A DNA stretch of 64,000 nucleotides from Guillardia theta CCMP2712 (GCF_000315625.1 NW_005434612.1:1-64000); one strand, 5' to 3'. Numbered from the stretch's first letter, positions 40,795-64,000 are shown. Numbers and translations: made by a program. The notes: generated by a model not told the origin, from the letters alone.

Positions 40795-43700
40795 TCAATG
40801 TCTACTCTCACGAAAGAGCTTGCGAGGCCTCAACTCGTCCTCCCCGTCTTCCTGTCGCTGCTGGCATGGCCGTCAGATCTCTCGACTATGACCTCCAGTC
40901 TCACCTCTTGATTTTTCACTCGCTTCCTCCTGGTCAAACGGGTGCTCTGACTATCCTCCTCCTCCTCAAGCTCCTGGCAGTTCTTGATGATCTCCTGCCA
41001 AAGGCACACTCGTGACTACGAGGTAGCAGGAGGTCAGGAGGCCTACCTTGAGCTCCTTGTCGATGGAGTCAAGCTCATCTCTCTGCCGTTGCAGCTCCTT
41101 ATATGCTTTGGCTCTCCAGTACTCGACGATGCCCATCCTTGCACACCTCACTTGCTTGTCCAGCAGCGTCTGGCTCCCGTCCCATGAAATGACCTTGTTC
41201 GGTCGGTCCAGTCCCACCACCATCTCGCCTCGAAGCATGGAGCGCGTGCGGTAGCGGATGGCATCATCCGACTGCTCGAAGACGACGAGCCTCCTGAAGA
41301 ATCGCTCGGCGAAGGAGAGCAGCTTCCTGTCTGTCTCTGCATCACGAGACTTGTTGAGGACGATGAAGCTGTCGGCTCGTCCCAGGGCCCCGCGAGACTC
41401 CTCGACGTCCTCGGGCAACCTGTCCTGCTCTACCAGGCAAGCGCTCTTGACTCGACACTTGGACTGACGGCAGATGCCGTCCATCTGCTCATCCAAGTCT
41501 CCATCGCTCTGAAAGATGACGGAGTTGAGGTCCTCGCCGAAAGCTGTCGACAAGGCCGTCTGAATGTCTGCTGCCCGAGGATGGTCGATGGAGAACAAGG
41601 AGGAAATACACCCTAAAGCGTCCTTGCAGCTCGCAGGAATCTTGACATCTGTGACCTCCGTCTTGTACTGAAGATCGTCATACTTGTTCTTGAAGTCCTT
41701 GAACCGCTCGGTCAGCTCTGCATTGTGATTCCTGATGCCTGTTTGAAACCTCTCACAGTCTCGCTTCAGCTTCCCCAAGTCCGAAGTTGCTGCGATATCG
41801 ACGTAGTAAGATTGGATAGCAGGAGAGACACCCTCTCGCTTGAGGAGCCTTGCAATAGCGTTCTCGATGTTTTGATGGCATATGGATGTTTGTACCTCGA
41901 CCCTGAGCTTCTCCTCTTCTTCTGTGTCGTCTTCGATAATCACCGGCTGTTCCTCGAAGGCGATGTTGGCTCTGCTCGCCTCCTGCACCTCCTCGTTCTC
42001 GTTGTCATTGATTGCAGTGTCATCGTGCACGCCAGCAGATGCAGCAGGAAGCGTCACGTTCATCGTTCGCTGATCCAACGACCTTATGGCAATGTTGCTC
42101 TGCACGTTAAACACAAGCGTACAAGCGCATAACTCCTGCTGCTCTTGTCTCTGAGGCACGAGCGTGAAGGTTCCTTTGACCGTGGGATGACGAGCGTTGA
42201 GGGTTACCGCATTGGTCTCTATCCGGACGAGATGGTCCTCCAGCACCCGTGCCACCACTGTAGCCTCCCACTCGCTCGTGGGATGATAGTTTGTCTTTCG
42301 AGACGCCCGGTCACATGCAGCGAGCGTGAAGCCACACTGAAGAGGGTCGTCAGTCGCAGGAGCATGAAGCTGCAAGTCCAGCTGCTCTACAGGTCCTGTA
42401 GCAATGGCGTGAGATACAAGCGGACAATCATGTCAAGCAGACAGTGTCTCTTACCTGACTTCACCTCCACGTTACAAGGCTTGGAAGCGATCGGAGGTCC
42501 TGCATACGAGGGTCTCGAGTCGACAAACTCAGCCGAGACCTGATGACTCCCGATCTCGCTGAGAGAGAAGGTGACGTGTACGCAGTTGCCGTCGAAGTTC
42601 TTGTACGACATGGGTATCATCTGCTTTTCACGGTACAGCCTCACATCCGGCATGGTACTCGTAGACCAGTCGTCGAGCTTTCTTTGGTCTTCGGTGTGGA
42701 GTTGGATCAAAGCTTCGAAGTCTGCTGCTGCAAGAGCTGAGCCTTGTGCGTACTCAAGATGTTTCTGTCGGTCTTTCACCGTCATCGCGATCTGAATGAC
42801 GGAGTTCCTAGCAGTTGCGATGACATTGAAGGTGAACATCTGTACTCGTTTTGACAAGATTTTAGGAAAATACTCTCCTGCTGGAAGGGCTGGAATTGTG
42901 CTGAGCTTGAAAGCATCCCCCCTTGACTCATCTGATACTTTCTCAAGCTCCCTGCTCTGTTTGCCTACCTGCAGCATCAGCGGCTGATCCCATGCAGCTG
43001 ACAAGTTGTTGTCCACACTGTCTGTAACGATGAACCTGATGTCACATTCGTACTCCGCCATGCTGGGGACTGAGAGGTTGACGAACGCTTGGCAGTCTGG
43101 CTGTACGCATATCTTGCACGGATCACCAGCTATCAGGTCCAAGTCCAGCTCGATGGGCTTCAAGTTGTAAGACTTTGTGCCACCTATACCTGTTTTCACG
43201 TTGAGCTTCAGCCCAAGCTTGAGAGTGCCCTTGGAGGGTTTACAGCGAATGAAAGCATTCCTTACAGTGATCTTAGAGCCTTTGATCGTGATGTTCCCAA
43301 GGGCATCTTTGCCTTCTACCACTTTGCGGTAGTTGTCATATAAAGTGACCGGAACCTCAAACCCATCTTCGCACGTGAAACTGAAGGCAAACTCATCATC
43401 CAAAGAAGGTTGGATGGGCGGGAAAACCACATATCCATCTCGATCCACTATGACTCCTTCCAACGTGAACAAGTCTCCTGCTTTGATATCAGAGATGCCT
43501 TGTGGTAGAGAAATCTTCAGCTTCTCAGGCTCTCCGGGGGTCACCAGGACATCAAGTTGGTACTGAAACAGTCGCGTCTCCTCTTTCTTCGTCTGCTTCG
43601 AGCCTGCACAGGAGAAGACCGAGATGGTCTGCTTGGAATTAGATCGTACGTACAACGGAGGCAGCGCAAAGACTTGATCCCGACCGGCTTCATAGACTGG

Positions 43701-46700
43701 CAGCTGTGCATTCATCCAGCTCATTTCTACTTTCAAGTTTGACCTGCCGTCCGCAAAGTGCTGGCAGGGCTGGTTTGTCTCGTCAGCAGCCACAAGGTAC
43801 AAGTCTGAGATCTTGTCGTTGTGCCGTGCGTTGAACGACACTGCTGCATTGTTGAGAGCCAACTCGACTCCTGATTGGAAGAGCTTCATGCGCCTCGGAG
43901 TTCCGCTCGGCTTCAGGGGACGTGAGAACCTCTGATGCAAGATCGTCGTCTCGGTCTCGTGGATGACATCTAAAGTCGCTTGAAGGCTCCGGGGAAACTC
44001 GTCGGAGTTGCAGAAGAACACATTGTCTGCCATCACATCAAGATCCAAAGTGTGCCTGAGGGAATCGTGAAACACAAGGCAACGACCCGAGATGTCTGAC
44101 AGCTTGACGAGATCACCGGCCACTGAATCCATTTGTAAAAGTAAGCGAGGATGATCACTGGTCTCCGAGAAATATTCAACCAAGATTCCAGTTTCATGTA
44201 CATGATTGAGAATAGACTTGACCCTTCCGAATTTTCTAACCTTCTGCCGCGATCGTCGGGAATCTCCTACTGAAATTTCTGCACCAGAATTCAAAATGAC
44301 ACAATCTCCTGTTTGGAAAAAGCCATGCTCCCTGTGAAATACCCCGACCGGTGCGCCTTGCTTGAGTATCATTTCTCTCCATCGACCCATGTCTGCTTCA
44401 CTAACTACCGTCTGAGCTGTTGCCGTATCATTCGAGAACAAAGAGCTCGCACACGAGCAGGTCAGGCGACATCTCCCTTTCCGTATCTTGTTTTCATCCG
44501 ACTGGCTATCGCCGTGAAGCAGGAGGTCCGGGCTCATCACCACGAGCTTGCCTTGGTTTCCGTCGCACATGTTTCCGCTCGCGTCTTGAATGCTGACGTC
44601 GACTGGCCCGAGCTGTTGGTAGTTGATATACTCCTCCCAGTCAGCGTCGCACTGTATACACGATGGCTGCCCATGCTGGACTTTGATCGAGATATTGTGC
44701 TCAACGACCTTCTGCTGATGAATGTCTGTGATGACTATGCGAGCAGGATACGTCCCGACGCCCCCATGAAGCACGCAGAGGTCTTGGATCCTGATGCTCC
44801 CAGCGTACTCAGGCGTGAAGGATAGCGAGACATCTAGAGCCCGAGCCTCGTCTACCAGAATGTCAAGCGTGTGGACGCCGAGTTGGAGATCGATGCTATT
44901 GTTGTATTTGTCGTGCACCTGTACTTCTAAGGAGGTCGTTTGCCCGAGCTCACATTGGATGATCGGAGTGTCTGGTCTGAGCGATACCTTGTGCATCTCT
45001 GCTGGGGTGATGTAGAACGTCGCGGGCTCGCACGTGAGCGGCGTCTGACCTGCAGCTGGCTCAAGGGATATCGTATACCGGCCTGCGACAGTCGCGAGCT
45101 TCTTCACTATCTTATCAGGATACGACAGATGCCCATTGGACACTTCGAAGCTTTCTGAGCAATCTTGTGACGCCACTGTGACCTTGAAGATCGGGATGTT
45201 TGTTTGAATGACTTCGTTGTTTGAGTTCTTGCAGACAACCCTTGTAAGCGGTAACATGCCAGCCTTCACGATGTGGTTGCGGAACTCGATAGCGACTGAT
45301 CTGACTATCTGCTTCTCATTCTTTGCTCTGGTAGCCTCGAACTCTTTGTTGCTGAGGGGCCTCATGGAGTAGTTTTGTATTCTGAAGCGATTATGCTTCG
45401 TCATGCTGTTGTCTGAAGCCAATAGAAGAAGCTCGACCTCCCCTGACGGCAAGTTCAAGTCAAAGTGCTTATCTTGCAAGAACCTCTCGATCCTTCCTAT
45501 ATGACTTTCAATCTTTGCTCTCTCCTTTGTTTCTTTGTACAGCTCGACAAATTCACCCACCTTATACTCATTGTCGCAGAATATGATCTTGTCGTGCTGA
45601 GACATTCCTTCAGCATCTATGTACTTTGGGTTTTCGTCTTCGAAGGAGACCTCTGCATCAAACTTGAGGTGACATTCTTTGAGCCAGAAATCGTATGCTT
45701 TTGCAAGGTCCTTCGAGTCAAGTGCATCTTGTAATTTTCTCATTTTGGTTTTGCCCATGTTGAATGACCATTTGCTTGCCTCTGGCTCGATCCCTCGGTC
45801 TACAAAGAGAATGCCGAAAGTCCTTGCATAGCATCGCTGCGGAGCAAGCGTCTTCTCTTCCTCACGGTATCTCATGAAGCCAGGAACATACTGCTCCCCT
45901 GGAAGCCATCGTCCCATCCAGAACACCATGAAGCGGCGATCCAACGAGGTTGAGTGCCCATGCAGCTCGTCAACGTACGGGACTGTGTCCTTGTTGCCCT
46001 GGTTCGGGAAATAGAATATCGCCCCCGTCGCGATCGAGCGCTTGGTGGGGTCTGCATGGTCGGGGATCTCGACGTAGATGGGGAAGCAGTCCTTGGCGTC
46101 GTCGCTCAGCACTCGGTCAAGGCAGCACGTCGAGTCTGCAAGTCGATGCGGAGGGGCCGAGCTAGCAGAGCCTTGATGGATCACCTCGAACTCCAGGTCA
46201 ATCTGCTCCGACATAGAGCCAGACTGGTCTCTACATTGCTTCAGCAACTTCTTCAAGCGGCTCATATCTTCATGAAACCTGTGTTCCCTCTGTGGTTTAC
46301 GACCCGTTCGCTTCCCATCTACAATCGGCTGATCTATCAGCCTCAGCACCTGGTCTACAAACCTCTTCGCGCCTGCCTGCTCTCCTTCAAGGTACATGTA
46401 GTACATCGCTCGGATGTTGCTCAGGCAGTGCCTGAGAGCTGCCGCAGAGAAAGCTCCATCGCTGGTAAAGAAATCAATCTTGAAGCCTTCTATGTCGATC
46501 TTGCAGAAGCTCGACGCGACGTCTTCGCCCTCCTGGAGAGACCTGATGCATCTAATTGCTTTCCAAGCCGATAAGGTTGAGTCTTCCACTACTTGCACAG
46601 TTCTGCTGTCTCGCGTCTTACTGCTCACAACATGTCTTGTCCCAAGGGCATTACAAGCATTTTTGGCCCCCACGCCATATCGAGAGAAGGTACCGCTCAG

Positions 46701-47437
46701 ATATCTCCTGAACGATGTGCAACCCTCGTCGTACAGCTCCTGCGTAGATGCTCGCTTTGACCCATACTGAAGCATTTCCTTGGGGTCTGAGCAGCCTATT
46801 CCATTGTCCACAAGATGAAAAGTGCCCCTTTGGAAGTTGAGTGTAACTCTGATAGTTTTGTTCTTGTCGTATTGGTTGCAGAGTACATGTTGTATCGAGT
46901 TATCAAAAAGCTCCCCGATCGCTGTCAAGAAAGAGTAATTACTGGTCGAACTTTCTAACATGCGCCCTTTATCAGGTGTGGTATCTTCCACTGTGACACA
47001 CTTGAAGGTAGAGAGGGTGTCTGCCAATGATCACATCAGTTCTTGACATGTCTCAGCTCCGGCATTCACCTTTAGCGGGCAGCAGCAGAAGTTTGTACGG
47101 TCCGGCATTGGAGTCAAACTGGAGCGAAGAGACTTCCATGAGGGTAATAGCATTGTAAAGCTTGAGGCCCTGGTACAGGACATGCTTGTCAGTTGAGATA
47201 GCGCATCATGGAAGGATGCGACACCTTGACCGACAGGTTGAGCTCGTCAGTCAAGTGCTTTACGAGGCTCTCTACGGCTTGGAAGGTGTTGATCTCTTGG
47301 ATGCTCAGGCGGGTGGGAGGTCTGGGGCCACGTGGTCAGGTAAATCAAACATCAGCATACTTCTGTTACCTTGCGGTTCCATCGGTGGTAGGAGGTAATA
47401 CTTTATCATCGATGTGTATCTCAACAGGCTCAGCCAT
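40795..47437 (-). CDS. SMCHD1/GMI1-like protein (GHKL ATPase - transducer - BAH-like - beta-rich linker with extra BAH - coiled coil - SMC hinge), about 2,100 aa, about 7 exons
   Basis: GHKL motifs AIGELFDNS, LVDNGIG, FSRYGVGAKNA, VVSSK; SMCHD1-like transducer words FMVFWMGRWLP, RCYARTFGILF, FWLKECHLKFDAEVSF; hinge-like ALGCISSLFSID...ALSTAFGEDLNSVI and LVVFEQSDDAIRYR; a short intron at about 42388-42454 joins the 1546-aa and 469-aa ORFs. Confidence 0.85.
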
Positions 47438-47711
47438 CTGTTGACGGTTCAGCTCTTTTTCCTCATCCTCTGTGTATTGATAGATGCGTTGATGAAAAGA
47501 AGGAGAAGCGCGAGCCGAGGGGGAAGGGAAGGTGGATAGGAATGAAGAATGTGAGGGGAGCGAGGGGAGGGAGAAGAGAGGAGAAGAATCCGCAAGCGGA
47601 AGGGAGGGAGAAGAATGGAAGGTTCCAGGATGAAGAAGTTTTTTGTGGCGGGCGGGAGGGAGGAAAGCTAAAAGTTGAGATAATGACAGTAGAGGGAGAA
47701 AGAAATGGAGA

Positions 47712-48021
47712 GAGGAGCGGGGAGGAGCGGGGAGGAGCGGGTAGGAGCGGGGAGGAGCGGGGAGGAGCAGGGAGGAGCGGGGAGGAGCGGGGAGGAGCGG
47801 GGAGGAGCAGGGAGGAGCGGGGAGGAGTAGGGAGGAGCGGGGAGGAGCGGGGAGGAGCAGGGAGGAGTGGGGAGGAGCGGGGAGGAGCGGGGAGGAGCGG
47901 GGAGGAGCGGGGAGGAGCGGGGAGGAGCGGGGAGGAGCGGGGAGGAGCGGGGAGGAGCGGGGAGGAGCGGGGAGGAGCGGGGAGGAGCGGGGAGGAGCGG
48001 GGAGGAGCGGGGAGGAGCGGG
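47712..48021. repeat. 10-bp G-rich tandem repeat (ggaggagcgg)n upstream of the SMCHD1-like gene
   Basis: About 30 units with occasional single-base variants. Confidence 0.92.
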
Positions 48022-48948
48022 GTAAGTGGAGCAGGCTCAGTGGGGAGAGAGGTGAGCTCGAGGGGGTTAAGAGAAGCAAGAAGGACTGAGCAGGCTCGCC
48101 TCAGAACTTTCTCCTATTTAACTAATAGTTAATCCTATTTGACTAATAATTTCTCCTATTCGCCCGTTACACGGACAGACCCACCTGCAGACCCACAAAC
48201 TGAGGTTGGACTGAGTGGGGACGAGGGGTCACTCCTTGCTGGGTTGTGGGGGGGATGAGGGACGAAAGTTGGAGGTCGGCATGGAAGTTGGCACCCAGTG
48301 TTGGTACCGGCCGCAGGTAACCCCCACCCCCTTCGAAATAACCCCCTGTCATAATTCTGCATGTGACCCCTATCTAAAAAGTTAAATTCATAGTACCCCC
48401 ATGGGTATTTTGGAGCATTCCCGTTGACTACCCCCGTCTATAACACCCCTACCCCCTATTCAAGAATTCGCAACAGAAACCGCCCAAGAATGTTGTCTTT
48501 CGCTCCCGCTGCTCTCGCATGCTTGCCATCGCGATCATAATTTCTCCTCTCCCTTGTCCTTTCTTCTCAGCCGACCCAATCTTTCCCGTCCTTGCATATC
48601 TGCTTCCTTGATCCTACTTCTCTACCTTCCCCAACGACTCGACTCGCCCTCATCCCTCAAATTTCAATCCCTTGCTACCAGCCCCCCAGTCTTGTCCATT
48701 GCTCGTCCTTGTACTTGTTTAACTCTTTATTTCTATTGCTAATCTCTCCTGTCCTCCCCCCTATCTGCCCTTGCATCTGTTGGAGAGCACTGAGCACTGA
48801 ACCTGCTCCACGAGCCTTATCCGGCATTTCCGTCCCCTGCTTTACCCTCAATCAACTCACAATTGTTGCCTCCTACTTTTCTTTCCCTGCCTCTTCACCT
48901 GATCCTCCTGTTGACAACTTGTTCCCCTCGGGCTGAAGTTTTGTTCAG

Positions 48949-50339
48949 ATGGGATGCTCATCTTCTTCGAACGCGAAGGCTGTACAGGAGCCTGTGAAAC
49001 CTCCTGTAGCAGATGCAAAACCCGCGCAGACAAGCAGCGCACCACCAAAGAAGGAGGAAACTCCCACGCCTGTTGAGAAACCTGTGGAGGAGCAACCAAA
49101 GGTGGTGGAAGCATTGGAGAAGAAAGAGAAGGAGGAGGAGAAGGAGAAGGAGAAGGAGAAGGAAGAGAAAAGGAGCAGGAGAAGGAGAAGGAGGAGAAAG
49201 AGAAGGAGACGCAAGGGAACGCGAAGAATGAATTCGAGCCATTGCCAGTTCCAACTGAGGAGGTGACGGAGCATCGAGAGCGTCCCAACCTGGTGTGGGC
49301 AAAGAATCCCATGGCTGAAGGTGAGGAGGAGAAAGAACAAACGGGAGGCGAAGCTCCTGCCGAAGGGGAGAAAATGATCAGTTTCAACCCCATCCTCCTT
49401 CCCGTTCCACCTGCGGAAGGAGGATCAGCAGTACAGCTCTACTGCCCTCTCACCTCTGTTGAGGAGCTGTCCGGATTGAGCGTCCTCGTGCTTTTGAGGG
49501 AGAATAAGATCCCGCACGACTTGAAGAAGGAAAGCATCGCTGAACCTGAGGTAAGGAAAGGAGAGGAGAGGAGAGGAGAGGAGAGGAGAGGAGAGGAGAG
49601 GAGAGTCTTGCTGAGCGCATGGAGCAGAGAAAGATGCCCGTCTACCTCGATGACGGAGGGCTTCACTTGTGGTGCTTCCGTCTCTCCCCTTTCCGCCTCC
49701 TCCTCCTGACTTGCTTTCCTCAGGGAAGCCAACGCTGCTCTGCGCTACATCTGCACCAAGGAGGAGCTGACTGGCTGGTACCCTGCCGATGTCCAGAAGA
49801 GAGCGATCTGCGACAATGCGCTCGAGTTCAACGGGAACGTGCTGATGCCAATGATGGCAGCTGCGCTGGAGAGCTACAAGAAGGGAGAAGAGCGGGCGGC
49901 AGAAGCTGTGAAGCAGGACGAAGAAAAGTTCCTCAGCGACGTGTGGCCTGCATTGAATCATCTGATCCAGAGTGGGGAAGGACCCCTGCTGGTACGTTCT
50001 CCCACCTTCCACCTCCCTCCCTCCTCGCTGCTCCTCGCTGCTCCTCCTGCTCCTGCTCCTCCTCCCTCCTCCCTCATCATCGCTCCTCATCGCTCCTCCC
50101 TCCTCCCTCCTCCCCCCTCCCCCCTCCTTCCTCGTCTCCCCCTCTTCCTCCTCTCAATTCAACTTCCCTCACTGACTCGGGCCGCGCAGGGCGGTGCGGC
50201 ACCCAGCATCGCCGACCTCGCCGTCTTCCCGCACATGCTCGTCGTTACCCGCAAACTACCAGAGCACTTCGTGTCGCAGCACGAGGGAGTGAAGAGCTAC
50301 CTCGAGGCTCTGCACGCAGCCCTCCCCTCCTTGGGATGA
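48949..50339 (+). CDS. Glutathione S-transferase-like protein with an N-terminal MGC acylation motif and a charged linker
   Basis: MGCSSSS start; GST-N-like KMPVYLDDGGLHLW/EANAALRYI, WYPADVQKRA; GST-C N-cap GGAAPSIADL. Confidence 0.78.
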
Positions 50340-50668
50340 AAACCCATGAAGGAGGCTGAGAGCTGGGTGTAGGGAGGAGTATGATCTTAAATTTTCCATT
50401 CGAATAAATAATTGTTTTGCTGTCAGTCGTCCTTGAATCCCCTTGGTGNNNNNNNNNNNNNNNNNNNNNNNNNNNNNNNNNNNNNNNNNNNNNNNNNNNN
50501 NNNNNNNNNNNNNNNNNNNNNNNNNNNNNNNNNNNNNNNNNNNNNNNNTTCGTCTCCTCTCTGGTATGCCTTCCCCCGTCCTTTCTTCCTCTCCACCTGA
50601 GTTTTTTCCGTCCCATCCTCCTCCTCCTCCACCTCCTCCTCCTCCTCCTCCTCCTCCTCCTCCTCCTG

Positions 50669-53600
50669 TCATCTCTCTCCTCCCCTCAATCTTCCCTCAG
50701 CCTCTTCGAGCTTCTCCCAGGAGACGCGCCAGTCTCGGAGGTTCGTCGAACGGGACCTGCGCCTTGTCAAAGCCCCTCCAACCTCTCCCTCCCTTGCCTC
50801 CCACACCTCTCCGATTAACTTGTGGAAGTCTTCCCACCATTCCAGCATCAGCGGCAAGTAACAAACTCTATCCACTGGATCTTCTCGTCCTGCAACGTCG
50901 TGAGTTTTCTTCCCCTCTCCTGTCTGTCCTCCTCCTCCCCCTCCTCCCCCTCCTCCCCCTCCTCCCCTTCCTCTCCCTCCCCGCCTGCCTCTTTCTATCG
51001 TCCTAACATAACAAATGTTCGGTCCCATACACTGTCTCTTCTTTCTCATCTCAGACTTACTCAGCCATCCCTCCTGCCATGGCTTCGGCAATCCGGTGAA
51101 GTCAAACCCTGCAACCTTGAAATCCGTCCAAACCTGATTGCATGCATGAGGGAAGGAGCAGAAGGGAGAGGTAGCCAATCCAAGAGTGGAGGGGGCAGAG
51201 AAAGGCAAGGGAATCGTGGGAAGGCTTCCTTCCCCAACCTCCTTCCTATCCGCCTTGTAGAGAAGGAGAGGAAAGAAGAGAGGAGAGGAGAGGAGAGGAG
51301 ATTCGAGTAAACTTATGGTCCAACCATCTTGAAGCGCGAAACAGTTCTCTTCCAGGAAATCTGCATGCCCGTCAAACTGCATCAGTTTGATTCTCCCATC
51401 CTCCTTCCCTCCTTCCCCTTCTGTCCTTCCACTCGCTGTGCTGTCCTCCTCCCAATGCAATTCTCTCCCATCCGCCCCCTCGCCTCGCTCACCAGGCTCG
51501 GATGGTACAGGAGATGATCAGGAAACAGCGACAGGAGCAAACCCGCTGAACAGATTGACCAGTCAGACCTTGATAGACGACGAGTTGCCTCGCCTCCTCC
51601 CCTTCCTCTCAATTCCACAAAGTTTTGCATCGTCTCTCTCCCGAAACCTCCTCCCTATCCGCCTTTCCCATTCTCTCCTCTCCCTCTCCCTCTCCCATTT
51701 CAACCTCCCTCGTCTTCCTCCCCGCTCATCCTCGCTTCCTTCTTCAAAGTGCCTCACCGTCACTCCCGTCGTACGAAGGAAGACCCATCGCCCTCTGTCA
51801 AACTCGTCAGAATGGAAGCGACGAGGCGAGCCTGACCTCAACAAGATCCTCGAACTTGTGCTCAGCCGGAAGGCACAGGAAGACACAGGACATGATCCTA
51901 ACAAGACTGAAACCCTTGTTAACACCTGCTCTCTCGTCCCCTGTCTCTCCCTCCCTCCCTCCCTCCATCCATCCATCCATCCATCCATCCATCCATCCAT
52001 CCATCCATCCCTCCATCCCTCCATCCCTCCCTCCCTCCCTCCAATTCGCTCTCTTTCAAATCTTTTCTCCGCTCCTCCTCAATCTTCTTATACAAGTCTC
52101 TCTTCATCGTTCCGTCAGAAGTTCTTCGCCACTTGGTCGCGTATGGATAAGCTCCTGACATCCCTAGCAGTCAAGGCGGCATAATGTAGAATTGAAGGAG
52201 AGAGATCAAATATTCCTCTCACACTCGGACAACAATCATCATTCTCGGATCTTGCCATCTCGAGACACTGTTTCAAAGACAAGAATCTAATGGTCTCACC
52301 CAAACTGAATCGCTCATGAGAGAAAGCTTGATTGGGACAACTGAAGAGGAAGGTGTCTGCATCGAGATACACAACCTGCGTTCCCATCACATGCGCACCA
52401 CCTGACTTCCACTCTCAGCAACCACATCTTCTATCTCATACAAAATATCTTTTCTCACACAACCCTGTTCAATCCTACTCTTTCTGACTCTCTTCAACCG
52501 CTTTAAATTAGGTTGTTCTTGCTCACCCTGTCCCACCGCCCTTTCCTCTTCCCCTCCCCTCTCCTTCCTCCTCCTCTTACCTTCTCATACTCCGTCAGGT
52601 TCCATACATGCAACTTGCTGTAGCCGGCACGCAAGCTCTCTCTGCAACCGTTGAGGAAAGAAGAATCTCGTTACTGCCTTCATCCCTCCTTCCATCCCCC
52701 CGCCTTCTCTTTGCTGAAACGCAAACCTTCCTCCTCCTCCTCCTCCTCCCATCTCCCTGCCTTCTCTTTGCTGACTGCGCTGCTTCCTCCTCCCCCCCAT
52801 CTCTTGCTGGTCACCTGACGACTTCGTTGTACGGAGAGTAAATCGGATCAATCAACTTCACTTTGACGTCTGCAGGAAGAGTAGAAATTAGGCGTTTGAG
52901 CTTAGCAAGGGCCAAGTTCGTTTTCACCGTACTGCTGCAACATTGTCCTGAGATTCAGAAGCTCCCCAATGTGATTTGCAAGCAAGATCAGGACATCTCT
53001 TGCCTCCTTCAACTCAATCTCAGTTGATGCTGCATGAAAACAGCATTCTCTCGTACATCATCTTTGCACACTGTCCGAATTGCTCGTACAAGCGTAAGAG
53101 CTCCGAAGATGTAATCTTCGCTAAATACGATGGTCACCCAAGCAGATTTTCTCTCTTGGGATATCACGGCAGGAGTTTCGCTACGTCCGTGTCTTGCTTC
53201 ATCTGGGCACCTTGAAAACCTATCAGACATCTTCGACTTCAAAAAACTCTTTCACGTTTCATCGGCCGCGAGCTTGACCTCCAGCTCGTGCTCCTCCCCG
53301 ACTCTGTGAGAGATCCAGTCTTGGACCAAGTCGCCATTCTTGATCGCATTCAGCTCGACAAGAGAGAAGGTGAACTTCCGCAAGGATGAACTTCTCCCGA
53401 CATCCTCACACATGAACTTCTCGGTATCATTCAGCACAAGGACAGGCTGATCGTCAAACCCTTCTACTACAAGATATGCTTCACGAGGGACTTGCATGAC
53501 GTCAACCGTTGAAATCTTGTCTCTCATTACATGCTTCACTTCAAAGACCCTTCATCTTACCTGGACTCGAGCGCAACTCAGATTGAAATTTTCTCCTACG

Positions 53601-54455
53601 CTTTTCTCCGCTTCATCATGCACATACGGGGCACGTCTAGAAATCCGTACGAGAATCTTAAGAAGGTCTTATGCTTCCATCTCAACAACATGCTCAAGTT
53701 TTCACCTGGAGATTGTTTGCAGGAGAAATACTCGATATGCACCTACACATGTCTATTCATTGCGATTGCAGTAGGGTGTGATATTCACCGATGTTTGATG
53801 TTCTTGGAAGCAAATCCATTACATACAACATCCATAGGCATGTAGTTGTATTCAAAATCTAAAGGTAGTGAAGTCAGGAACGATCGTCGATGAGCTCAAT
53901 CAGGAAAGTATTCATCAACCCTCCTCCCATGCGTGCTCAGAGCTTCAGCATGCAAATCTCACCGGTCTCATAGATCGGTTCCGAAGAAACAGTGAACGTT
54001 GTCATCAATCTCTGCAAAAGCTCCTCCTCCTCTTCACCATGGAGGCTCCCTGATGGCGCGAGCATGTCGACTGTCAGAACATGGTTCCCGGGCTCTGCCT
54101 TGACCTTGTGCTCCCTCCATGTGCTGCTCCCCACATACTGCACGCCAACTTCTACCATCTCCTCTCCATCAAGTTGGAATCGCAGGTAGCTTCCTTGCAG
54201 CGGCTTCTCGATGCCGTAGGACAAGACAAAGTGCCCATCAGGGCACGTGCTTCCTTCCAAAGGAGAGAACAAGGTGACTCTCGTGCTCGGGTAGCTCGGG
54301 TTCACATAGCGTCCTCCTACTGGGAGCCACCACAGCATGTGCAACTCAGCATCATGCTGAGCTCTCGAGTGGATCGTGTCGTGCGCTGAAGTAGAAGCGC
54401 TCGGCAGGGATTGAGCGAGCAGAATGAGCACATGTACAGGGATGGAACGTGACAT
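50669..54455 (-). CDS. Secreted GT8-family (glycogenin-like) glycosyltransferase with a long N-terminal extension, multi-exon
   Basis: Signal-like N-terminus; [23 protein letters not shown] (GT8 start), VVYLDADT (DxD), DFTGLPKPW (the HxxGxxKPW position). Confidence 0.72.
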
Positions 54456-55119
54456 GGTCGACTTGTCTCAGTCAGACTTTCTCATCAGTCCTGACAGATC
54501 TCCCCCTCCCATCTCCTCCTCTCATCTCATCGCTCCATCTCCTCCTCCCATCTTCTCTCATCGTCTCTCCCCATCCTCCTCCCAGGGCAGGATCACCCAT
54601 GAGAAACCATGATCCGCATCTAACGAGCCTTCACTGGGATTTCTCTAGGGATTTCTTTGGCAGGGAAAATTGAGCGGGGATGAGGTTGACCGGCGCATGG
54701 AGACCCCTGCAACCCAGCATGGCGGCAGCGGTAGCGCAGAGATCATGAAGGAGGAGGAGGAAGTGAGGGAGAAGAGAGGGGTAGAGGATGAGGTAGAGGT
54801 GAGGAAAGGTAATATTGAGCAGTGAAGGAGGGAGGGATCAAGGCTTGTATGATACCATGAGTTCAACCGTGTTTGCTCAGCGTTCAGTTAATGATGTGTA
54901 GTTGCGCATGTCTGTTTTTCGGCACTTTTTGTCCATCTAGAAGATCTATAACTCTGCAGGAGTGACTGTCTACAATTGGTGTGAGTGCTTTTTTTTGATG
55001 TCATCAAAAATATGTTCTAGATTATTGTGATCATTTTGGAAAGATATACCTTGAAACCTTTCATGGACGTACATTGAATATTAAGTCGTTGGTTGATTCT
55101 GTTGCAGAACTAAGAAACC

Positions 55120-56016
55120 ATGTTCGCCAATAAAGCCATTCCAACGCCTTCAAAATCAGGGGAAAATAAAGGTATCTTCAAAAAGATGAACTCAACAGGA
55201 CAAGCTGGCAGCAACAGCCAAGACGGTTCGAGCCGTAGCTTGACTCATGGATCGGATCTGGACATCTTCAAAGCAGCGTCTGCTGGCTCCTTGAACCTGC
55301 TCAAGGACCTCATTGCTGCTGGCCAGCCCATCGATGCTACGGACGAGTCTCGGAGAACAGCTCTTCATCATGGTTCACGAGGAGGCTATTATGAGCTGGT
55401 TGAGTACCTCCTGGCAGCCAAGGCAGACCCCAAGGCAAAGACCAAGGAGAACGGGTGGACCCCTCTGCATGAAGCGAGCTCAGGTGAAGTGGCGGAGCTA
55501 CTTATCCTATCCAAAGCAGAAGTCAACGATTTTGATGCCTGGGGGATGTCCCCCCTTCACATCGCCGCGAAGGAGGGCAACGTTGACGTGGTGCGATGTC
55601 TGGTGCAGTACAAGGCTCTCCTGAACCCGAAAGACGGCCTGGGTCGAACTCCCCTCCACCTCGCCTCGCAGAATGGACACCTCGAAGTCGTCCAGGAGCT
55701 GGCGTCCGACGGCGCAAACTTGCACTCTCTTGACAACAAGCACAGGACCGCGAGGGACAATGCGATGAGTTACGGGCATCGAGAAATCACCAAGGAGTTC
55801 GAGAAGATCGAGGAGCTTCTCGGTACCATGGGCGTCGGAGGAGAATCCCTGCGAGCGCTGCCGGCAGGATCTCCGGCCAGGCTCGCGAAAGGACCGAACA
55901 ACAGCCCGATCGTGCGCCCCAAGACAGCAGATCGCGTCTTCGATGATACGGATGAAGGAGCAGCAGCGGGAGGAGGGAAACCGAATGAAAGCCAAGTATT
56001 GAAGTTTGATGATTGA
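55120..56016 (+). CDS. Ankyrin-repeat protein
   Basis: RTALHHGS, GWTPLHEA, GMSPLHIAA, GRTPLHLAS repeats in an intronless 298-aa ORF. Confidence 0.93.
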   Translation: MFANKAIPTPSKSGENKGIFKKMNSTGQAGSNSQDGSSRSLTHGSDLDIFKAASAGSLNLLKDLIAAGQPIDATDESRRTALHHGSRGGYYELVEYLLAAKADPKAKTKENGWTPLHEASSGEVAELLILSKAEVNDFDAWGMSPLHIAAKEGNVDVVRCLVQYKALLNPKDGLGRTPLHLASQNGHLEVVQELASDGANLHSLDNKHRTARDNAMSYGHREITKEFEKIEELLGTMGVGGESLRALPAGSPARLAKGPNNSPIVRPKTADRVFDDTDEGAAAGGGKPNESQVLKFDD

Positions 56017-56498
56017 CGTTTGTTGCTTCTGTTTTCTTGATCTGACAATTGCTTCGCCCTCATGCTTATTCACATGTTTTGTGTTGGTTTTCTTATAGAC
56101 TCAACAAAGTTCAAAGGTTTCAAAATAAAAGATCGCATGTCGACCGTCTCTGACACTCGCGGATCAGTTGATGGTTGATAAAGACTTGAAGCAGGCTACA
56201 TGCCGTTCACTAAGGGCCGCAATTTACTGAGCGAATTCAAGTCGTAACGAGGACCACCAGAAGAGGCGATCAAGAGGCTTGACCCTGATTTCAAAGTGCG
56301 AGTCTGATCAGAGCAAATTTAACTAAAACATTAGTACCTACGCTACGCAATGCACTCGGAGCTTCCATATTGAAGACCTCTACCTCACCAGCCGAGGCTC
56401 ACACCGACTCACTGTCAGCCAATGCTAAGGCCCGGGATGAGGGAAAAGACACTCGGACATAACCTTGAAAGCTCCTTGAGGAACAAGCCTGTAGATCC

Positions 56499-57957
56499 GA
56501 TGGAACGTATGCCAGCCGTGCCAGTCAGATAGCGCCGAGTTAACAAAAACTCTCCTGTAAACCAAGACGACTTACGTGGCAGGCGGCAATGTAGTACATG
56601 TGACGAAGAGGAGGCCTTCCTAGCCGTCTTGCTAAGGTCCCCTCATGTCTGGATGCTTGGGTTTCACATCCTAGTATACAGTCTATCTCTCATGTGCTCC
56701 TCAATTCTGGTTTCGTGTGCATTAAACTCGGTCTTGAGCAAAAACTGTCTTGTTGAGATTAAGGTCGATGTGATATCTGCGTGACTTTGGACTAGTACAA
56801 GTCTAACAAACTTGTATTCCGTCGGTTATGAGCCTCGATTACATGCTCAATCATGTTGATCTTATATTTGGTTAGTTGAATCTTTTCAGTACTGGAGTTT
56901 TTTCTTTCTTGGTATCGTTTCGTTACTGTCGAAAATTCATGCAATTCAAGCCTTACAAATTCGGATGACTCCTCTCTTCAATCAGGCTCTCTCTCTAGCC
57001 GCAAGTTGTTTAGGCCTCTCATCTCAGCCTCAATTTGTTTGATTGATCTTCGAATTGGAAAAACAAGCCTTTCCCCAGCCAGATTGGTCGGTCGAATATC
57101 TGCTTAACCGTGTGGAAACGCACTTGAAGCTGATTCGATTTTAATCTTCTTGATCTTTGAGTAGGATCAAATGGAACTACCAGGAGATCTGGCGGAAGTT
57201 TTCATGTCATGGAGCTAGGCTGTGGCATGCATAACTGGAGCTACTTCTGGATCGGCGAACAAGGTACAACTGCACAACAACAATCTTCGAATGCCTTGAA
57301 ACGGATGTTCCATCTCGCGGCAGCAATCTCTGGTCACAAGTTCTTTACGGTTCAAAATTTATCTTTTGGTCTTCAAATGCCGGCGGGCACGCTCTCTCTC
57401 TCTCTCTCTCTGTTATCTGAACTCCGAAGTTCTCTCCTCAGACTCTCTTATCTTATCCTCCTTCTCTCGTCATTGCATCAGCTCGCCAGGCATCTCCCTT
57501 ATCTCTGCACTGCACATCTAATAGCCCTGCATGAAAATATTCTTCAGAATGGACAATCCTTGAATGGTTATTGCCCGCTCAGCTTGACTGTGAACTTGAC
57601 GTTGTATCATCGTATCTTGACTTGGATCTGCTGACATTCTTGTTTGTGTGACTTTCAGACGTCCGATGTAACGTACTATTTCAGAAACTCGGGGGGAGGA
57701 TGGAACGTATGCCAGCCGTGCCAGTCAGATAGCGCCGAGTTAACAAAAACTCTCCTGTAAACCAAGACGACTTACGTGTTTGCGAGGCGGCCAATGTAGC
57801 GTGTGTGGACGAAGAGGGGGCTTTCCTAGCCGTCTTGCTAAGGTCCCCTCATGTCTGGATGCTTGGGTTTCACATCCTAGTATACAGTCTATCTCTCATG
57901 TGCTCCTCAATTCTGGTTTCTTGGACTAGTACAAGTCTAACAAACTTGTATTCCGTC
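56499..57957. repeat. Direct repeat pair, about 56499-56823 and 57699-57957 (the second lacks about 70 bp)
   Basis: Shared gatggaacgtatgccagccgtgccagtcagatagcg...ttggactagtacaagtctaacaaacttgtattccgtc. Confidence 0.9.
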
Positions 57958-58551
57958 AAGATCAGTGCACGGTCGAAGGATCCAGGACTGGACCATCCTT
58001 TCCTCCAAGTCAAGACCATCCTCAAGACCATCCTGTGATCCGCCGCAGTGCCAGACCGTCGCAGGCTCCAACAGGCGGGCCCGCGGCTGTGACCTGGCCG
58101 CCGGGCCCCGCGGGGGCAGCCGCCGGGGGGGCGGGTGACGGTGGGCTGGGTGGGGGGGGGGGGCGGCAGGCCCGCGACCCCGGGCCCGGGTCCGCCGGCT
58201 GCAACATAAGCTTCACAGGACCATATCCGGCAGTTTGGCGGCAAGGTGCAGCGCCCGGCGGAGCGAATCGTGAAGGGGAGGGCGAACAAGGAGGGAAGGG
58301 GGGGGGACGATGAGACTGAGTCAGAGAGAAGAGATATACATAAAGGTAGACAGGTGAAGGGTAGATGAGTCTCATTGCATCAGTAGTTCGGAGTACCTAA
58401 GACGAAGGGCTTGTACGGATGGAGTAACTCGCAGTCTGATTGCTTTGGTTGCAGACTCCTGTGTACTGGGCGCTACTTTGTTGTCTGCAGCAGCATGCTA
58501 TCGGACTTTGTCACGGAGTTGAGGCGAGCAGTTTCTTCATAGCCTTCACTG

Positions 58552-60869
58552 ATGCAACGCTGGTCTCCATACGTCTGGTTTCTGGTTTTCCTATGTCTGA
58601 ATGACAACACCTGGTCTTCAGTTAGCACTTTCCGTGCTCCAAATCCGCGAGCTGGAACGATACGTGTCACTCTGCATGTCTTATCGAGAGTGAGGTTCAA
58701 ACCTTTGAGGATCAGGGGAGGAAATGTGAAGGAAGAAAGCCAACAGGTCAAGTGCACAGCATGCGGCAATCTCGCTGTGAAGAGGTATGGCTCCTTACCT
58801 ACTCCCCTGCATCTGAATTTGCTGCCAGGACTGTGAACAAAGCTGGTCCAAACAAAGGAAGGCAGTTCTTCACCTGCACGTCAAGTCAACCGACTTGTCG
58901 GAAATTCTTCAAATGGGATGATGGAAATGTGGGAGGGGCAGATGAGAGAACGCAAGGTGGCGCGCAGTCCGGCAGCTTGAACGGATCTCCGTTCTCTCGT
59001 GTTGGAGTGTCACCACCAACTATCGTTCAGAGAGTTGCACAACAAGACGGTGATGATTTGAACACATATCGCATCTCGACAAAGTTTGATAACATCCTCA
59101 GGTTCTGTTATTCTACGTAATGCAAGCACGGGGACCTTCTTGGCAAGGTCTCCACATGGAGTTATGATGAACATGACTGAAGATGCTGTAATACTTTCTT
59201 GCCGCATTCATGCAGTCGGTGTAATCATTGGAACAGATGCGAAATAGAAGATTGGAGGAGGATAGCAGGCATGACTGGCCAAGGACAGAGCAAACGCCTC
59301 TGCTTTCTCCACGCCATGCTACCACTCTTTCGGGAACACCTTTCCGCCCGAGACACTATGGTGGTGATCAAAACAGATTACAAGACCCGCAGACCCCTAG
59401 AATAGATTTCTCTAACCTGTTTTCTTCACTTAGAGAAGACTCGATCGAGTCACCCCATGGCAAAAGGCATTCGCCAGGATTTGGTGCTGCCCATGAGAAC
59501 CCTTCGCCCGGTGGCTTTGGATTAGCCAGCATGTCCTTGCCGGGTCGTTTGCCCGCAGGTGCTACGGGGTTTCGATCAGCTTCTGGATTCAAACCCCCAA
59601 GGCCTGCAAACCTTCAAAATCAGGAAAATTTTGGTCAAGAATGCCCTGGGGCATTTCGCACGTTTGCTGTTGGAGTTGGAGAAGCAAGTTTGCGACCTCT
59701 CGAGAAAAGAAGAGGCCCGATCTTGTTGGGAAATGGAAGCTCAGGAGAGTTTTCGTCTGTGGAATTCTATCGCTCGTCATCTGGTCCTGCACAGGTAAAA
59801 ACGCGAAATCCATCATCTGACAGTGATGCGCAACCTGATGCAGAGTAACCTTCATGTCATAAATGCTCAATGGCAGTTCCATGGATGCAACATTTTATGC
59901 CAGGGAGGGATTGCACTGATGTGCGTGAAGGTGCAGAGAAGATGGAACGGAAACAAAGGGTTTGATTCGCATTGCCCAGGCTGCAGAGGTTGCCTTAGAT
60001 CGATGCAAAATCGGTGGAATATCGGGTGAGGACCCAGCCAGCTGGTCTTCGGATGGGTTGGTAGCCATGGCCGATACCACTTGCTCCCTGGAGGTCGAGA
60101 AAATTCATTTTTCGTGCGTGACACTGACGATGTTTCATCCAGGAATGTGTCGTAGAAAACAACGGCAACGTTGGCGTGCTATCTCATGTAGGTTCTTCAG
60201 AAGTGACGGTTTTGAATTGTACCATGAGGAACAACTTCATTGCAACTGTGAGTTGGAATGTGCTCATTGATCTACTGCTCTGAATCTCCCTGCAGGGTGT
60301 CGATGATTCCTCCTCGTTGACTATCCAATTTTGTCATCTCTATGGCAATCAACACGGCGCAGTTTTTATCGGAGGGTCTGCGCAACGTGCTGAGGTCAGC
60401 TGAGTTGGGGGCATTGTCAAGCGCTCTGTCATTTGCAGTTGCGCGATCTGAACTTTTCTGCAAGGTTGAGGTAACGAATAGCAGCATCGACGGGTTTGTT
60501 TGGTTGGGTCGAAAGGAAATATTGTGCAAAGTCGTCTTCGAAGGCAACACTTGTTCAAACCAGACGGATCTTGCGTCGGAGGCATCCGAACTCAGTAGAA
60601 TGTCTCCTGGAAGGTCAGTTGGGGAGCTTCAGTTAATCCTTCCCTGACACGGGCAGTGCAGCTACACCTGGAGATCGGTCGAGGAGGCTGCTTCCAACAA
60701 ACCCACATCTGTGTCCCCCAGTGTTCGTCTCTGCAGCCTACAGGTAGCGAATATTTCTCAGTCAGTTGGAATCCATGAGCCCATTGAACATTTACAGAAT
60801 GCGGAGGAGAGCGTGGAGGAAGCGATCTCGCACCGCGAGGCCCTGGATGCCGTTCGCTGCATTCTGTAA
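58552..60869 (+). CDS. GRF zinc-finger protein with probable C-terminal parallel beta-helix repeats, multi-exon
   Basis: VKCTACGNLAVKR/TVNKAGPNKGRQFFTC...CRKFFKWDD is a zf-GRF; later exons WQFHGCNILCQGG, VALDRCKIGG, ECVVENNGNVGV...LNCTMRNN look like beta-helix repeats. Confidence 0.68.
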
Positions 60870-61604
60870 GCCGTAGATCGATTTGTGGAGTTTCACGACT
60901 TTAGAAAAATGTTGGTGATTGATGTAAATGTCTGGTAACTTAAATAGCCATGAGTCCCCCGGCTGGGTGACAGATGGTAGCCTGGTGGTTTACTAACTAA
61001 GTTAGTGCAAAAAAAAACTGCCGCCGGGCGGCCTTGCCCAGTATAGCCTAGTAGCAGAAACCCTTCAGTGTATCTCCAGCCGGGCCGGGTCACGCCCGGC
61101 GGCCGGGTGATAAGGTTTAGGTTCAGGTTTTGGTTCAGATGTGATTGTCCTGAGGCGGCCCGTGATTTGCATGATGATTCCTACAAACTCATCAGTATTG
61201 GTAGCTTGATCCCTGACAGGGATCCAGCGAGGTGTCTACCAAAGTACTAGTCCTAGACTTAATAAATCTATCATGTGGGGTGGGGTGGAGGATAAAGTAA
61301 CTTGCCAGGCTAGTTCCTGGCTAAAAACTTGACCACCCCCATTTTCCCCTTCTACTACCCTACCTTGACATGCCTAGAGCTAGGAATCCCGCTCGATAAA
61401 TCCTTGGCCTTGCTCCCGCTTCCTACCTTCCGCTACCTCCGCACCCGCCGCATCTCTTCCTTCCTCTCTCAACCTGATCCGATCTCTGCTTCTCCTCTCC
61501 ATCTCCTCACTCTCTGTCCCTCTGTCTGCCTCACTCTGATTGAAGTGAAGGAGCTTCCCTCTTCCTTTCCATAGCCCTCCCGTTCTCCCTTAGAAAATCT
61601 CAGG

Positions 61605-64000
61605 ATGGATCGCCAAATGACTCAAATTGATATCTTGTTTCCGACCATCGATAATGATGAATCTTGCAAAACCCTAAGGTAACAGAAGTATGCTGATGTT
61701 TGATTTATCTGACCACATGGCCCCAGACCTCCCACCCGCCTGAGCATCCAAGAGATCAACACCTTCCAAGACGTAGAGAGCCTCGTAAAGCACTTGACAG
61801 ACGAGCTCAACCTGTCGGTCAAGGTGTCGCATCCTTCCATGATGCGCTATCTCAACTGACAAGCATGTCCTGTACCAGGGCCTCAAGCTTTACAATGCTA
61901 TTACCCTCATGGAAGTCTCTTCGCTCCAGTTTGACTCCGATGCCGGACCGTACAAACTTCTGCTGCTGCCCGCTGAAGGTAAATGCCGGAGCTGAGACAT
62001 GTCAAGAACTGATGTGATCATTGGCAGACACCCTCTCTACCTTCAAGTGTGTCACAGTGGAAGATACCACACCTGATAAAGGGCGCATGTTAGAAAGTTC
62101 GATCAGTAATTACTCTTTCTTGACAGCGATCGGGGAGCTTTTTGATAACTCGATACAACATGTACTCTGCAACCAATATGACAAGAACAAAACTATCAAA
62201 GTTACACTCGACTTCCAAAGGGGCACTTTTCATCTTGTGGACAATGGAATAGGCTGCTCAGACCCCAAGGAAATGCTTCAGTATGGGTCAAAGCGCGCAT
62301 CTACGCAGGAGCTGTACGACGAGGGTTGCACATCGTTCAGGAGATATCTGAGCGGTACCTTCTCTCGATATGGCGTGGGGGCCAAAAATGCTTGTAATGC
62401 CCTTGGGACAAGACATGTTGTGAGCAGTAAGACGCGAGACAGCAGAACTGTGCAAGTAGTGGAAGACTCAACCTTATCGGCTTGGAAAGCAATTAGATGC
62501 ATCAGGTCTCTCCAGGAGGGCGAAGACGTCGCGTCGAGCTTCTGCAAGATCGACATAGAAGGCTTCAAGATTGATTTCTTTATCAGCGATGGAGCTTTCT
62601 CTGCGGCAGCTCTCAGGCACTGCCTGAGCAACATCCGAGCGATGTACTACATGTACCTTGAAGGAGAGCAGGCAGGCGCGAAGAGGTTTGTAGACCAGGT
62701 GCTGAGGCTGATAGATCAGCCAAATGCAGAGATGAGACGACGCGGACGGATCGCAAACGCAAAAAAATTTTATCAACACGACCTGAGCTGCTTGAGGACG
62801 ATGCTGAACAAATATCTTGTTGAGTCTGGCTCTATGTCGGAGCAGATTGACCTGGAGTTCGAGGTGATCCATCAAGACTCTGCTAGCTCGGCCCCTCCGC
62901 ATCGACTAGCAGACTCGATGTGCTGCCTTGACCGAGTGCTGAGCGACGACGCCAGGGACTGCTTCCCCATCTACGTCGAGATCCCCGACCATGCAGACCC
63001 CACCAAGCGCTCGATCGCTACGGGGGCGATATTCTACTTTCCGAACCAGGGCAACAAGGACACAGTCCCGTACGTTGACGAGCTGCATGGGCACTCAAGC
63101 TCATTGGATCGCCGCTTCATGGTGTTCTGGATGGGACGATGGCTTCCTGAAGAAGATTTCGTACCAGGTTTCATGAGATACCGTGAGGGGGATAAGCCGC
63201 TTGCCCCGCAGCGATGCTATGCAAGGACTTTCGGCATTCTTTTTGTAGACCGAGGGATCGAGCCAGAGGCAAACAAGCTGGCCCTGAGCAAGTCTGCTCC
63301 AAATGTAAAGAAGATGAAGGAGGCGATTGACTCGAAGGACCTTGCAAAAGCATATGATTACTGGCTCAAAGAATGTCACCTCAAGTTTGATGCAGAGGTC
63401 TCCTTCGAAGACGAAAACCCAAAGTACATAGATGCTGAAGGAATGTCTCAGCACGACAAGATCATATTCTGCGACAATGTGTATAAGGTGGGTGAATTCG
63501 TCGAGCTGTACAAAGAGTCAAAGGAGAAAGCAAAGATTGAAAGTCATATAGGAAGGATCGAGAGGTTCTTGCAAGATAAGCACTTTGACCTGCACTTGCC
63601 AACAGGGGAGGTCGAGCTTCTTCTATTGGCTTCAGACAACAGCATGACGAAGCATAATCGCTTCAGAATACAAAACTATTCCATGAGGCCCCTCAGCAAC
63701 AAAGAGTTCGAGGCTACCAGAGCAAAGAATGAGAAGCAGATAGTCAGATCAGTCGCTATCGAGTTCCGCAACCACATCGTGAAGGCTGGCATGTTACCGC
63801 TTACAAGGGTTGTCTGCAAGAACTCAAACAACGAAGTCATTCAGACAAACATCCCGATCTTCAAGGTCACAGTGGCGTCACAAGATTGCTTGGAAAGCTT
63901 CGAAGTGTCTAATGGGCTTCTGTCTTCTCCTGAAAAGATAGTGCCCAATGGGCATCTGTCTTTTCCTGACAAGATAGTGAAGAAGCTCGCGACTGTCGCA
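61605..64000 (+). CDS. Second SMCHD1/GMI1-like paralog (5' part; runs off the window end)
   Basis: 61677-64000 is a near-identical reverse complement of about 47372-45089, including three introns; no stop seen in the stretches I translated from about 62027; the first exon differs (MDRQMTQIDILFPTIDNDESCKTLR). Confidence 0.85.

Follow-up and report, generated by a model that had tools for sequence, protein, structure and literature searches.

Probable concerted evolution, with islands of old divergence, in an inverted pair of SMCHD1-like genes of Guillardia theta

The window analysed here is a stretch of 64,000 nucleotides (nt) at the start of a 481-kb scaffold of Guillardia theta CCMP2712 (C62:1-64000 of scaffold G000:C62; the assembly comprises 87.1 Mb in 669 scaffolds), and it carries two very long SMCHD1-like genes, named copy A and copy B, in inverted orientation. 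Most of the gene body of A and B is nearly identical, introns included, and is interrupted by short islands in which the two sequences differ strongly; a third, partial member of the group, copy C, lies 35 kb beyond B. From the uneven ages of these segments and their distribution among the three copies, A and B are probably old paralogues in concerted evolution, kept alike by gene conversion among the three copies, with islands that have escaped it. The islands, we infer, date back to the old divergence and were not imported. Paralogues that evolve in concert but retain diverged islands are a well-known phenomenon, of which the present case is a new example, in a gene family without earlier description in this lineage; no mention of SMCHD1-type genes in Guillardia or any cryptophyte was found in the literature searched.

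Both A and B can be read as complete genes by in-phase translation of the exons:

40795..47437, minus strand: copy A, complete SMCHD1-like gene of seven exons, with 2,111 codons plus stop
47437-47370, 47321-47225, 47169-47070, 47020-42455, 42395-41047, 40994-40905 and 40860-40795, minus strand: exons of copy A
C62:61605-68298, plus strand: copy B, full gene of seven exons, with 2,128 codons plus stop, of which the window holds 61605..64000
61605-61678, 61727-61823, 61879-61978, 62028-66635, 66695-68043, 68096-68188 and 68233-68298, plus strand: exons of copy B

The six introns of each gene measure 44-59 nt and are GT-AG throughout, and neither gene has an internal stop codon. Reading frames were verified exon by exon and are in phase, the exon coordinates of B were transferred via the A/B alignment, and searches and structure predictions were run on single exons. 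In copy B the long open reading frames (ORFs) are of 1,560 and 467 residues. The splices of exons 1-3 agree with the public model GUITHDRAFT_142215 in A and with the window-encoded model P0011 in B. The public models are fragments, with 611 residues for A (GUITHDRAFT_142215), 625 for B (P0011) and 475 for C (GUITHDRAFT_142229), as the ATPase motifs are treated as intron and the models stop after about one third of the gene. The annotation is hereby corrected: the products of A and B are full-length proteins of about 2,100 residues, not the fragments on public record. This also bears on a concern of the first-pass annotation of the window, namely that the second copy might be truncated and untranscribed: copy B is complete, with seven exons and no internal stops.

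Upstream of A, a short ORF (an ATG and four codons, then TGA) is found at 47464-47447 on the minus strand, in the presumed 5' leader, with the main ATG 27 nt further on. A minisatellite (47709-48022) of about 31 copies of the 10-nt unit CCGCTCCTCC (gene strand) also lies upstream of A, about 270 nt from its start codon, and has no counterpart at copy B.

The two genes form the arms of one inverted repeat:

40788..47378: left arm, homologous with copy B (BLAST and boundary alignments)
61670..64000: in-window portion of the right arm, which continues to C62:68305
47379..61669: unique spacer of 14,291 nt with other genes inside (repeat finder and BLAST)

Within the window, an inverted repeat finder returned four collinear arm pairs, 45084-47378 against 61670-64000, with 91-98% complementarity and 14,291 nt between them. 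Since the right arm exceeds the window, the next 56 kb of the scaffold were added for self-BLAST, and here A and B appear as a single inverted match, 40788-47378 against 68305-61670, with 94.2% identity over 6,656 columns. The pair that the first-pass annotation had recognised, about 14 kb apart with 61677-64000 mirroring 47372-45089, is therefore real, and the repeat is about three times longer than was seen at that time. Extending the window, aligning the full genes and plotting identity and synonymous divergence (dS), as had been proposed there, yields a 6.6-kb repeat with mosaic identity and a dS of 0.04 in one class of segments against about 0.8 in the other.

The homology between A and B begins 9 nt 5' of the donor site of exon 1 and stops 7-8 nt 3' of the stop codon, and is confined to the gene body of A and B. 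In the shared intron 1, exactly the two differences quoted in the first-pass annotation are found, yet no alignment between the copies is possible in exon 1 or upstream of it; local alignments of the first exons and flanks, tested against shuffles, gave p = 0.09, 0.15, 0.20 and 0.95. Within the spacer the inverted repeat finder detected no arm-to-arm homology except CT/AG low-complexity matches. Such limits at the ends of the gene body are as expected if exchange lasts only where selection preserves similarity.

Sliding identity between A and B is about 98%, with short dips to 70-85%. When A, B and C are compared site by site, the differences are found to fall in about ten sharply bounded patches, and in each of them a single odd copy stands against two that agree. 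The main islands (divergence values for A against B) and the partial third copy are the following:

46212..46340, minus strand (B 62728-62832): island 1, a cassette of about 34-43 codons in the GHKL-S5 linker, B odd; amino-acid identity 0.37, dS 0.47, dN/dS about 1
45837..45914, minus strand: island 2, B odd; dS 0.88, dN/dS 0.14
45708..45788, minus strand (B about 63262-63332): island 3, B odd; dS about 2.2, dN/dS 0.18
63909..63944, plus strand: B-specific in-frame insertion of 36 nt, which repeats the following 12 codons in tandem and in diverged form
44079..44321, minus strand: island 4, the largest, 81 codons in the BAH-fold domain, A odd and B equal to C; amino-acid identity 0.56, dS about 1.0, dN/dS 0.37
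43374..43445, minus strand: island 5, A odd; dS 1.15, dN/dS 0.45
42825..42869, minus strand: island 6, B odd; dS 0.52
40909..40976, minus strand: island 7, in exon 6 and the C-terminal tail, where only A and B are comparable (boundary alignment)
C62:99038-103601, minus strand: copy C, partial, long exon only, in direct orientation to A (self-BLAST)

The islands are mostly conserved in length, with about 50% nucleotide difference between A and B, and copy C is odd in a few sparser patches. In island 4, the B/C version is identical to the paralogue on scaffold C231 at 43 of 80 residues and the A version at 29 of 78; the BAH domain of A is thus the derived version, being further from the other paralogues.

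The ages of the two classes of segments differ greatly. By the Nei-Gojobori method, background divergence between A and B is 0.040 at synonymous sites and 0.014 at non-synonymous sites (dN) over 1,294 codons, and the islands reach a dS of 0.81 and a dN of 0.34 over 249 codons, with dN/dS of about 0.4. Circularity was avoided by setting the islands from amino-acid differences alone and then counting fourfold degenerate sites in codons whose residue is unchanged. At these sites A and B differ in 12 of 48 cases inside the islands and in 21 of 554 outside (Fisher p = 1.7e-6), and the comparisons of A with C and of B with C are similar. The islands are therefore older at neutral sites and not just differently selected. 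The introns, with 8 differing positions between A and B (about 2.6%), behave like background synonymous sites. Taken island by island, dS ranges from 0.5 to 2.2, and dN/dS from 0.14 to 0.63 in five of the six islands, the exception being the linker cassette with a value of about 1; both versions of each island have thus long evolved as coding sequence. Neutral divergence is uneven along the pair, and homogenised tracts, introns included, stand beside old ones.

The third copy provides the evidence for exchange. Copy C matches solely A 42401-46958, at 94%, in self-BLAST; its locus is open for 1,588 codons, no hinge ORF was seen downstream of it, and its homology extends almost to the end of intron 4. 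In its islands, C is a mosaic. Indeed, B is odd in four 5' islands and one 3' island, where C carries the A version, and A is odd in two middle islands, where C carries the B version. Longest-run permutation tests (Sawyer-type) give p <= 1e-4 for all three pairs, and the segments of A, B and C fit no single tree. As C combines A-type and B-type islands, exchange, either non-reciprocal or reciprocal, is needed under any scenario. The first-pass annotation had offered, as one of two alternatives, a palindrome-like arrangement maintained by arm-to-arm gene conversion. Gene conversion is indeed favoured, with the bulk of the genes about 20-fold less diverged than the islands; the arm-to-arm part is too narrow, since C joins the exchange in direct orientation, and for the same reason the inverted geometry is not its driver.

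Upstream of copy C and on the same strand there is an ORF with a caspase domain of the Peptidase_C14 family (C62:105355-107103, minus strand) and a weak 'HisKin-conflict' match; the two together span C62:98943-107103. Direct repeats of 0.5-1.2 kb with 93-97% identity surround this caspase/copy-C locus (C62:97256-98469 and 107987-109157), with further repeats of that kind at C62:107362-107968, 110995-111453 and 113071-113679; no Pfam domains were found in the ORFs of these repeats.

The same data bear on a reading without any exchange, according to which three young copies would have acquired hypervariable cassettes, the islands, through local hypermutation or strong diversifying selection. The dN/dS of about 1 in the linker island, the sharp bounds and the mostly conserved lengths would fit it. 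However, divergence inside the islands is 6-7 times higher even at fourfold sites whose codons keep their residue, dN/dS takes values of 0.14-0.63 in islands other than the linker, and the mixed A and B versions in C demand recombination or conversion regardless. The hypervariable-cassette reading is largely refuted by these observations, and we regard it as very improbable.

Beyond A, B and C, a six-frame search of the genome found five full-length paralogues (on C231, C54, C41, C52 and C38), with 33-43% protein identity, together with two small fragments of the family; distant paralogues on other scaffolds correspond to GUITHDRAFT_121490, _141368 and _141135. In the tree, the tips of A, B and C are short (0.03-0.05) and meet in a tight clade with a long stem (0.45). 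SMCHD1-type proteins thus number at least eight members in a cryptophyte, and the contrast with the single-copy SMCHD1 of mammals drawn in the first-pass annotation stands. A further consequence of the mosaic is that, unless the islands are treated apart, gene trees will make the A/B/C split look far younger than it is.

The second alternative of the first-pass annotation was a recent duplication that captured a new promoter. In its fullest form, the gene body would have been copied in a recent segmental duplication (dS of about 0.04), landing in inverted orientation 14 kb away and acquiring a new exon 1 and promoter by chance, and the islands would have been pasted in later from divergent members of the family through conversion in short tracts. 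Several observations agree with this account: homology ends sharply and the residual similarity beyond its ends is not significant; the background, introns as well as exons, is little diverged throughout; copy C resembles a partial duplicate broken inside intron 4; and a fragment identical to A at the edge of an assembly gap hints at unassembled copies. The account is less favoured because it requires donors for the islands. Searches of the 87-Mb assembly with five islands, the three largest among them (the B versions of islands 1, 3 and 7, the A version of island 4, and island 5), found only self-matches, bar one fragment on scaffold C53 for island 4. Apart from that fragment, no donor emerged either when the loci of the five distant paralogues and the fragments on C53 and C29 were compared by local BLAST, the paralogues being too diverged, with only 33-43% identity in protein and 64-80% in short DNA stretches. 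A and B would have had to receive seven or more separate imports, all from functional genes that are now missing; that the donors would have to be functional follows from the dN/dS of about 0.4 in the islands. Moreover, a breakpoint falling by chance 7-8 nt after the stop codon is improbable. A recent duplication with later imports is, on balance, an unlikely explanation of the pair.

The fragment on C53 consists of 216 nt (G000:C53:292551-292766) that are 100% identical to A 43961-44176. It starts exactly at a gap of 100 Ns and runs into unrelated GA-rich DNA, and may be either the end of a chimeric contig or the rim of an unassembled fourth copy.

Some results weigh against concerted evolution of old paralogues. 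The gapped assembly, together with the C53 fragment, leaves room for a donor copy that was not assembled. The residual similarity of the first exons falls short of significance (p = 0.09), so that the flanks lend no positive evidence of an old duplication, and the abrupt ends of homology, with the limit of C inside intron 4, suggest a breakpoint that, in C at any rate, is fairly recent. Identical tracts between A and B reach 286 nt at most, which indicates that very recent conversion is absent. Orthologues of the A/B/C clade were not found in sister species, as transcripts of Hanusia phi group with other paralogues. No RNA for A or B was found, word-index protein searches giving only the truncated models derived from the genome, and an exact search of metagenome contigs for the exon 2-3 splice junction had no match.

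The position of the two copies in the assembly also has to be considered, as a gap lies between the arms:

50449..50548: assembly gap, intergenic, separating the A-bearing from the B-bearing contig (gap map, ORF and 12-mer checks)

Copy A is contained in the gap-free block 28187-50448 and copy B in the gap-free block 50549-74078. To the left of the gap, a plus-strand ORF has its stop codon at 50337-50339, and all three plus-strand frames are closed at most 45 nt before the gap; to the right, the nearest minus-strand ORF (50669-51460) has its stop codon at 50669-50671. The two flanks have no 12-mers in common. From the closed frames and the stop codon on the right, the gap is intergenic and touches neither arm. 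Since A and B are on different contigs, their head-to-head orientation and the 14.3-kb spacing depend on scaffolding.

Could the pair then be an artefact, with B a misplaced allele or A assembled in a collapsed or duplicated form? The gap between the arms, the draft state of an assembly with many gaps and the stray A-identical fragment on C53 would be in keeping with such an error. Nevertheless, each copy is embedded in a gap-free block and has neighbouring genes of its own on both sides, the flanks and first exons of A and B are unalignable, the nucleotide difference of about 50% in the islands and the 36-nt insertion of B are far beyond allelic variation, and there is a third copy with flanks of its own. 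Allelic mis-assembly is accordingly an unlikely source of the second copy, and an assembly artefact of any of these kinds is scarcely credible. Explanations outside those considered here are given equally little weight.

Concerted evolution by interlocus gene conversion would work as follows. A and B would be old duplicates kept alike through repeated non-reciprocal exchange, in which double-strand breaks or nicks in one copy are mended from another copy. Heteroduplex and synthesis tracts would end where mismatch density becomes excessive, that is, at the edges of the islands and at the ends of the gene body. Neutral divergence in the gene body, in exons and introns alike, would thereby have been brought back to about 2-4%, conversion halting just inside exon 1 and just after the stop codon, so that little difference is left in the ATPase, the hinge and the long region between them. 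The islands would have escaped homogenisation and kept their old divergence under purifying selection, either because they block tracts passively or because selection retains them, converted variants faring worse. A crossover between A and B would be expected to invert the spacer.

The protein domains support the assignment of these genes to the SMCHD1 type. In exon 4 (4.6 kb), a GHKL ATPase is recognised by Pfam HATPase_c_3 (26.8 bits, cut-off 25), and its motifs ELFDNSIQH, DNGIGC and YGVGAKNA are identical in A, B and C. The same exon contains the S5 transducer domain (Pfam SMCHD1_S5, 51 bits, cut-off 27) and matches the mouse SMCHD1 structure 6MW7 with E = 8.4e-5 as a single sequence and E = 9.9e-21 with a family profile. 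A mid-protein segment was modelled by AlphaFold with a predicted local distance difference test score (pLDDT) of 76, and its top Foldseek matches are all BAH domains (SHL, EBS, BAHCC1, DNMT1, TNRC18 and ORC1; E from 2e-5). The hinge is encoded by exon 5:

41047..42395, minus strand: exon 5 of A, coiled coil, SMC hinge and coiled coil (AlphaFold and Foldseek)

By sequence, this exon stays below threshold in Pfam (SMC_hinge, 17.6 bits, cut-off 22.5) and has no match in a sequence search of the PDB. Its AlphaFold model (pLDDT 60, with 70-85 in the hinge core) has an alpha/beta core between two coiled coils, and the top Foldseek matches are the SMC hinges 4RSI, 5H69 and 1GXL/1GXJ, with E down to 4e-8 and a TM score of 0.69 to 1GXJ. 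Thus, with moderate confidence, an SMC hinge is predicted here by fold. Between A and B, 12 of the 449 residues of the hinge exon differ, and five of these differences lie close together immediately ahead of the hinge core. The GHKL ATPase, the SMCHD1_S5 domain, the BAH fold and the SMC hinge fold together justify the label 'SMCHD1-like'.

This layout gives the islands a possible functional meaning. The BAH fold reads histone marks in other proteins, and as the BAH domain is the main island, it is the natural place to seek functional specialisation. Selection may keep the islands, in which case A and B would read different chromatin marks with a nearly identical ATPase and hinge. In a more specific form, the islands would be protected by selection as targeting surfaces, with a different BAH reader, ATPase-S5 linker and tails in each copy, and the ATPase core and hinge would be interchangeable; we consider this quite doubtful. 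If true, the alga would possess homodimeric and heterodimeric SMCHD1-like clamps that recognise chromatin marks in combination, and copy C, the caspase-linked derivative, would draw on the same interchangeable ATPase body. Mixed dimers of A and B through the hinge, as proposed in the first-pass annotation, are plausible by analogy with mammalian SMCHD1. Whatever keeps them, the islands show where, in a very large protein, the paralogues stay different, and these places are few.

The spacer and its surroundings contain other genes and repeats:

55120-56013, plus strand: ankyrin repeats (Pfam E = 8e-41)
58752-59117, plus strand: GRF zinc finger (Pfam E = 1.4e-9)

Among the spacer genes named in the first-pass annotation, the ankyrin and GRF genes are thereby confirmed, and GST and GT8 stay unverified, with no Pfam match on the 20 ORFs tried. 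Short direct repeats unrelated to the SMCHD1-like genes are found at 34350-34599/36072-36321 (250 nt, 98%) and at 56499-56717/57699-57923 (220 nt, 94%). Further along the scaffold, C62:77530-78927 has three assembly gaps among tandem repeats of 160-420 nt that are 96-100% identical, and is probably an unresolved tandem array.

Comparable cases of homogenised pairs are known. In Drosophila, Hsp70Aa and Hsp70Ab are a divergently oriented gene pair homogenised by conversion, and palindromes of the Y type have arms that are more than 99.9% identical, intergenic DNA included, with a short spacer and arm-to-arm conversion. The Guillardia pair shares with both the inverted partners and the non-reciprocal exchange that would keep them alike. 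A palindrome of the sex-chromosome type is rejected, as arm identity (94.2%), arm content (gene body only) and spacer (14,291 nt with other genes) all fail to match. A closer parallel in pattern is offered by GOT1p1 and GOT1p2 of Tigriopus californicus, a mosaic between paralogues in which conversion is ongoing and the islands were read as protected by selection (PMC3728101). In both systems, neighbouring paralogues have near-identical stretches beside sharply bounded diverged ones, and introns are homogenised together with exons. Unlike in GOT1, the exchange in Guillardia involves three partners, one of which is partial and has a different gene setting, and at 6.6 kb the genes are very long.

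At the level of the protein, the reference is mammalian SMCHD1, together with plant GMI1. The likeness includes a length of about 2,000 residues, an N-terminal GHKL ATPase with an S5 domain of the SMCHD1 type, a BAH-like module in the middle and a C-terminal SMC hinge flanked by coiled coil. In mammalian SMCHD1, weak BAH homology has been noted, the protein homodimerises via its hinge, and both hinge dimerisation and ATP hydrolysis have been shown (PMC4628070). In contrast, sequence identity is low in the Guillardia proteins, to the point that the hinge is sub-threshold in Pfam and escapes a PDB sequence search; copy C is without a hinge and adjoins a caspase-like ORF; and the one gene of mammals stands against a family of at least eight in the alga.

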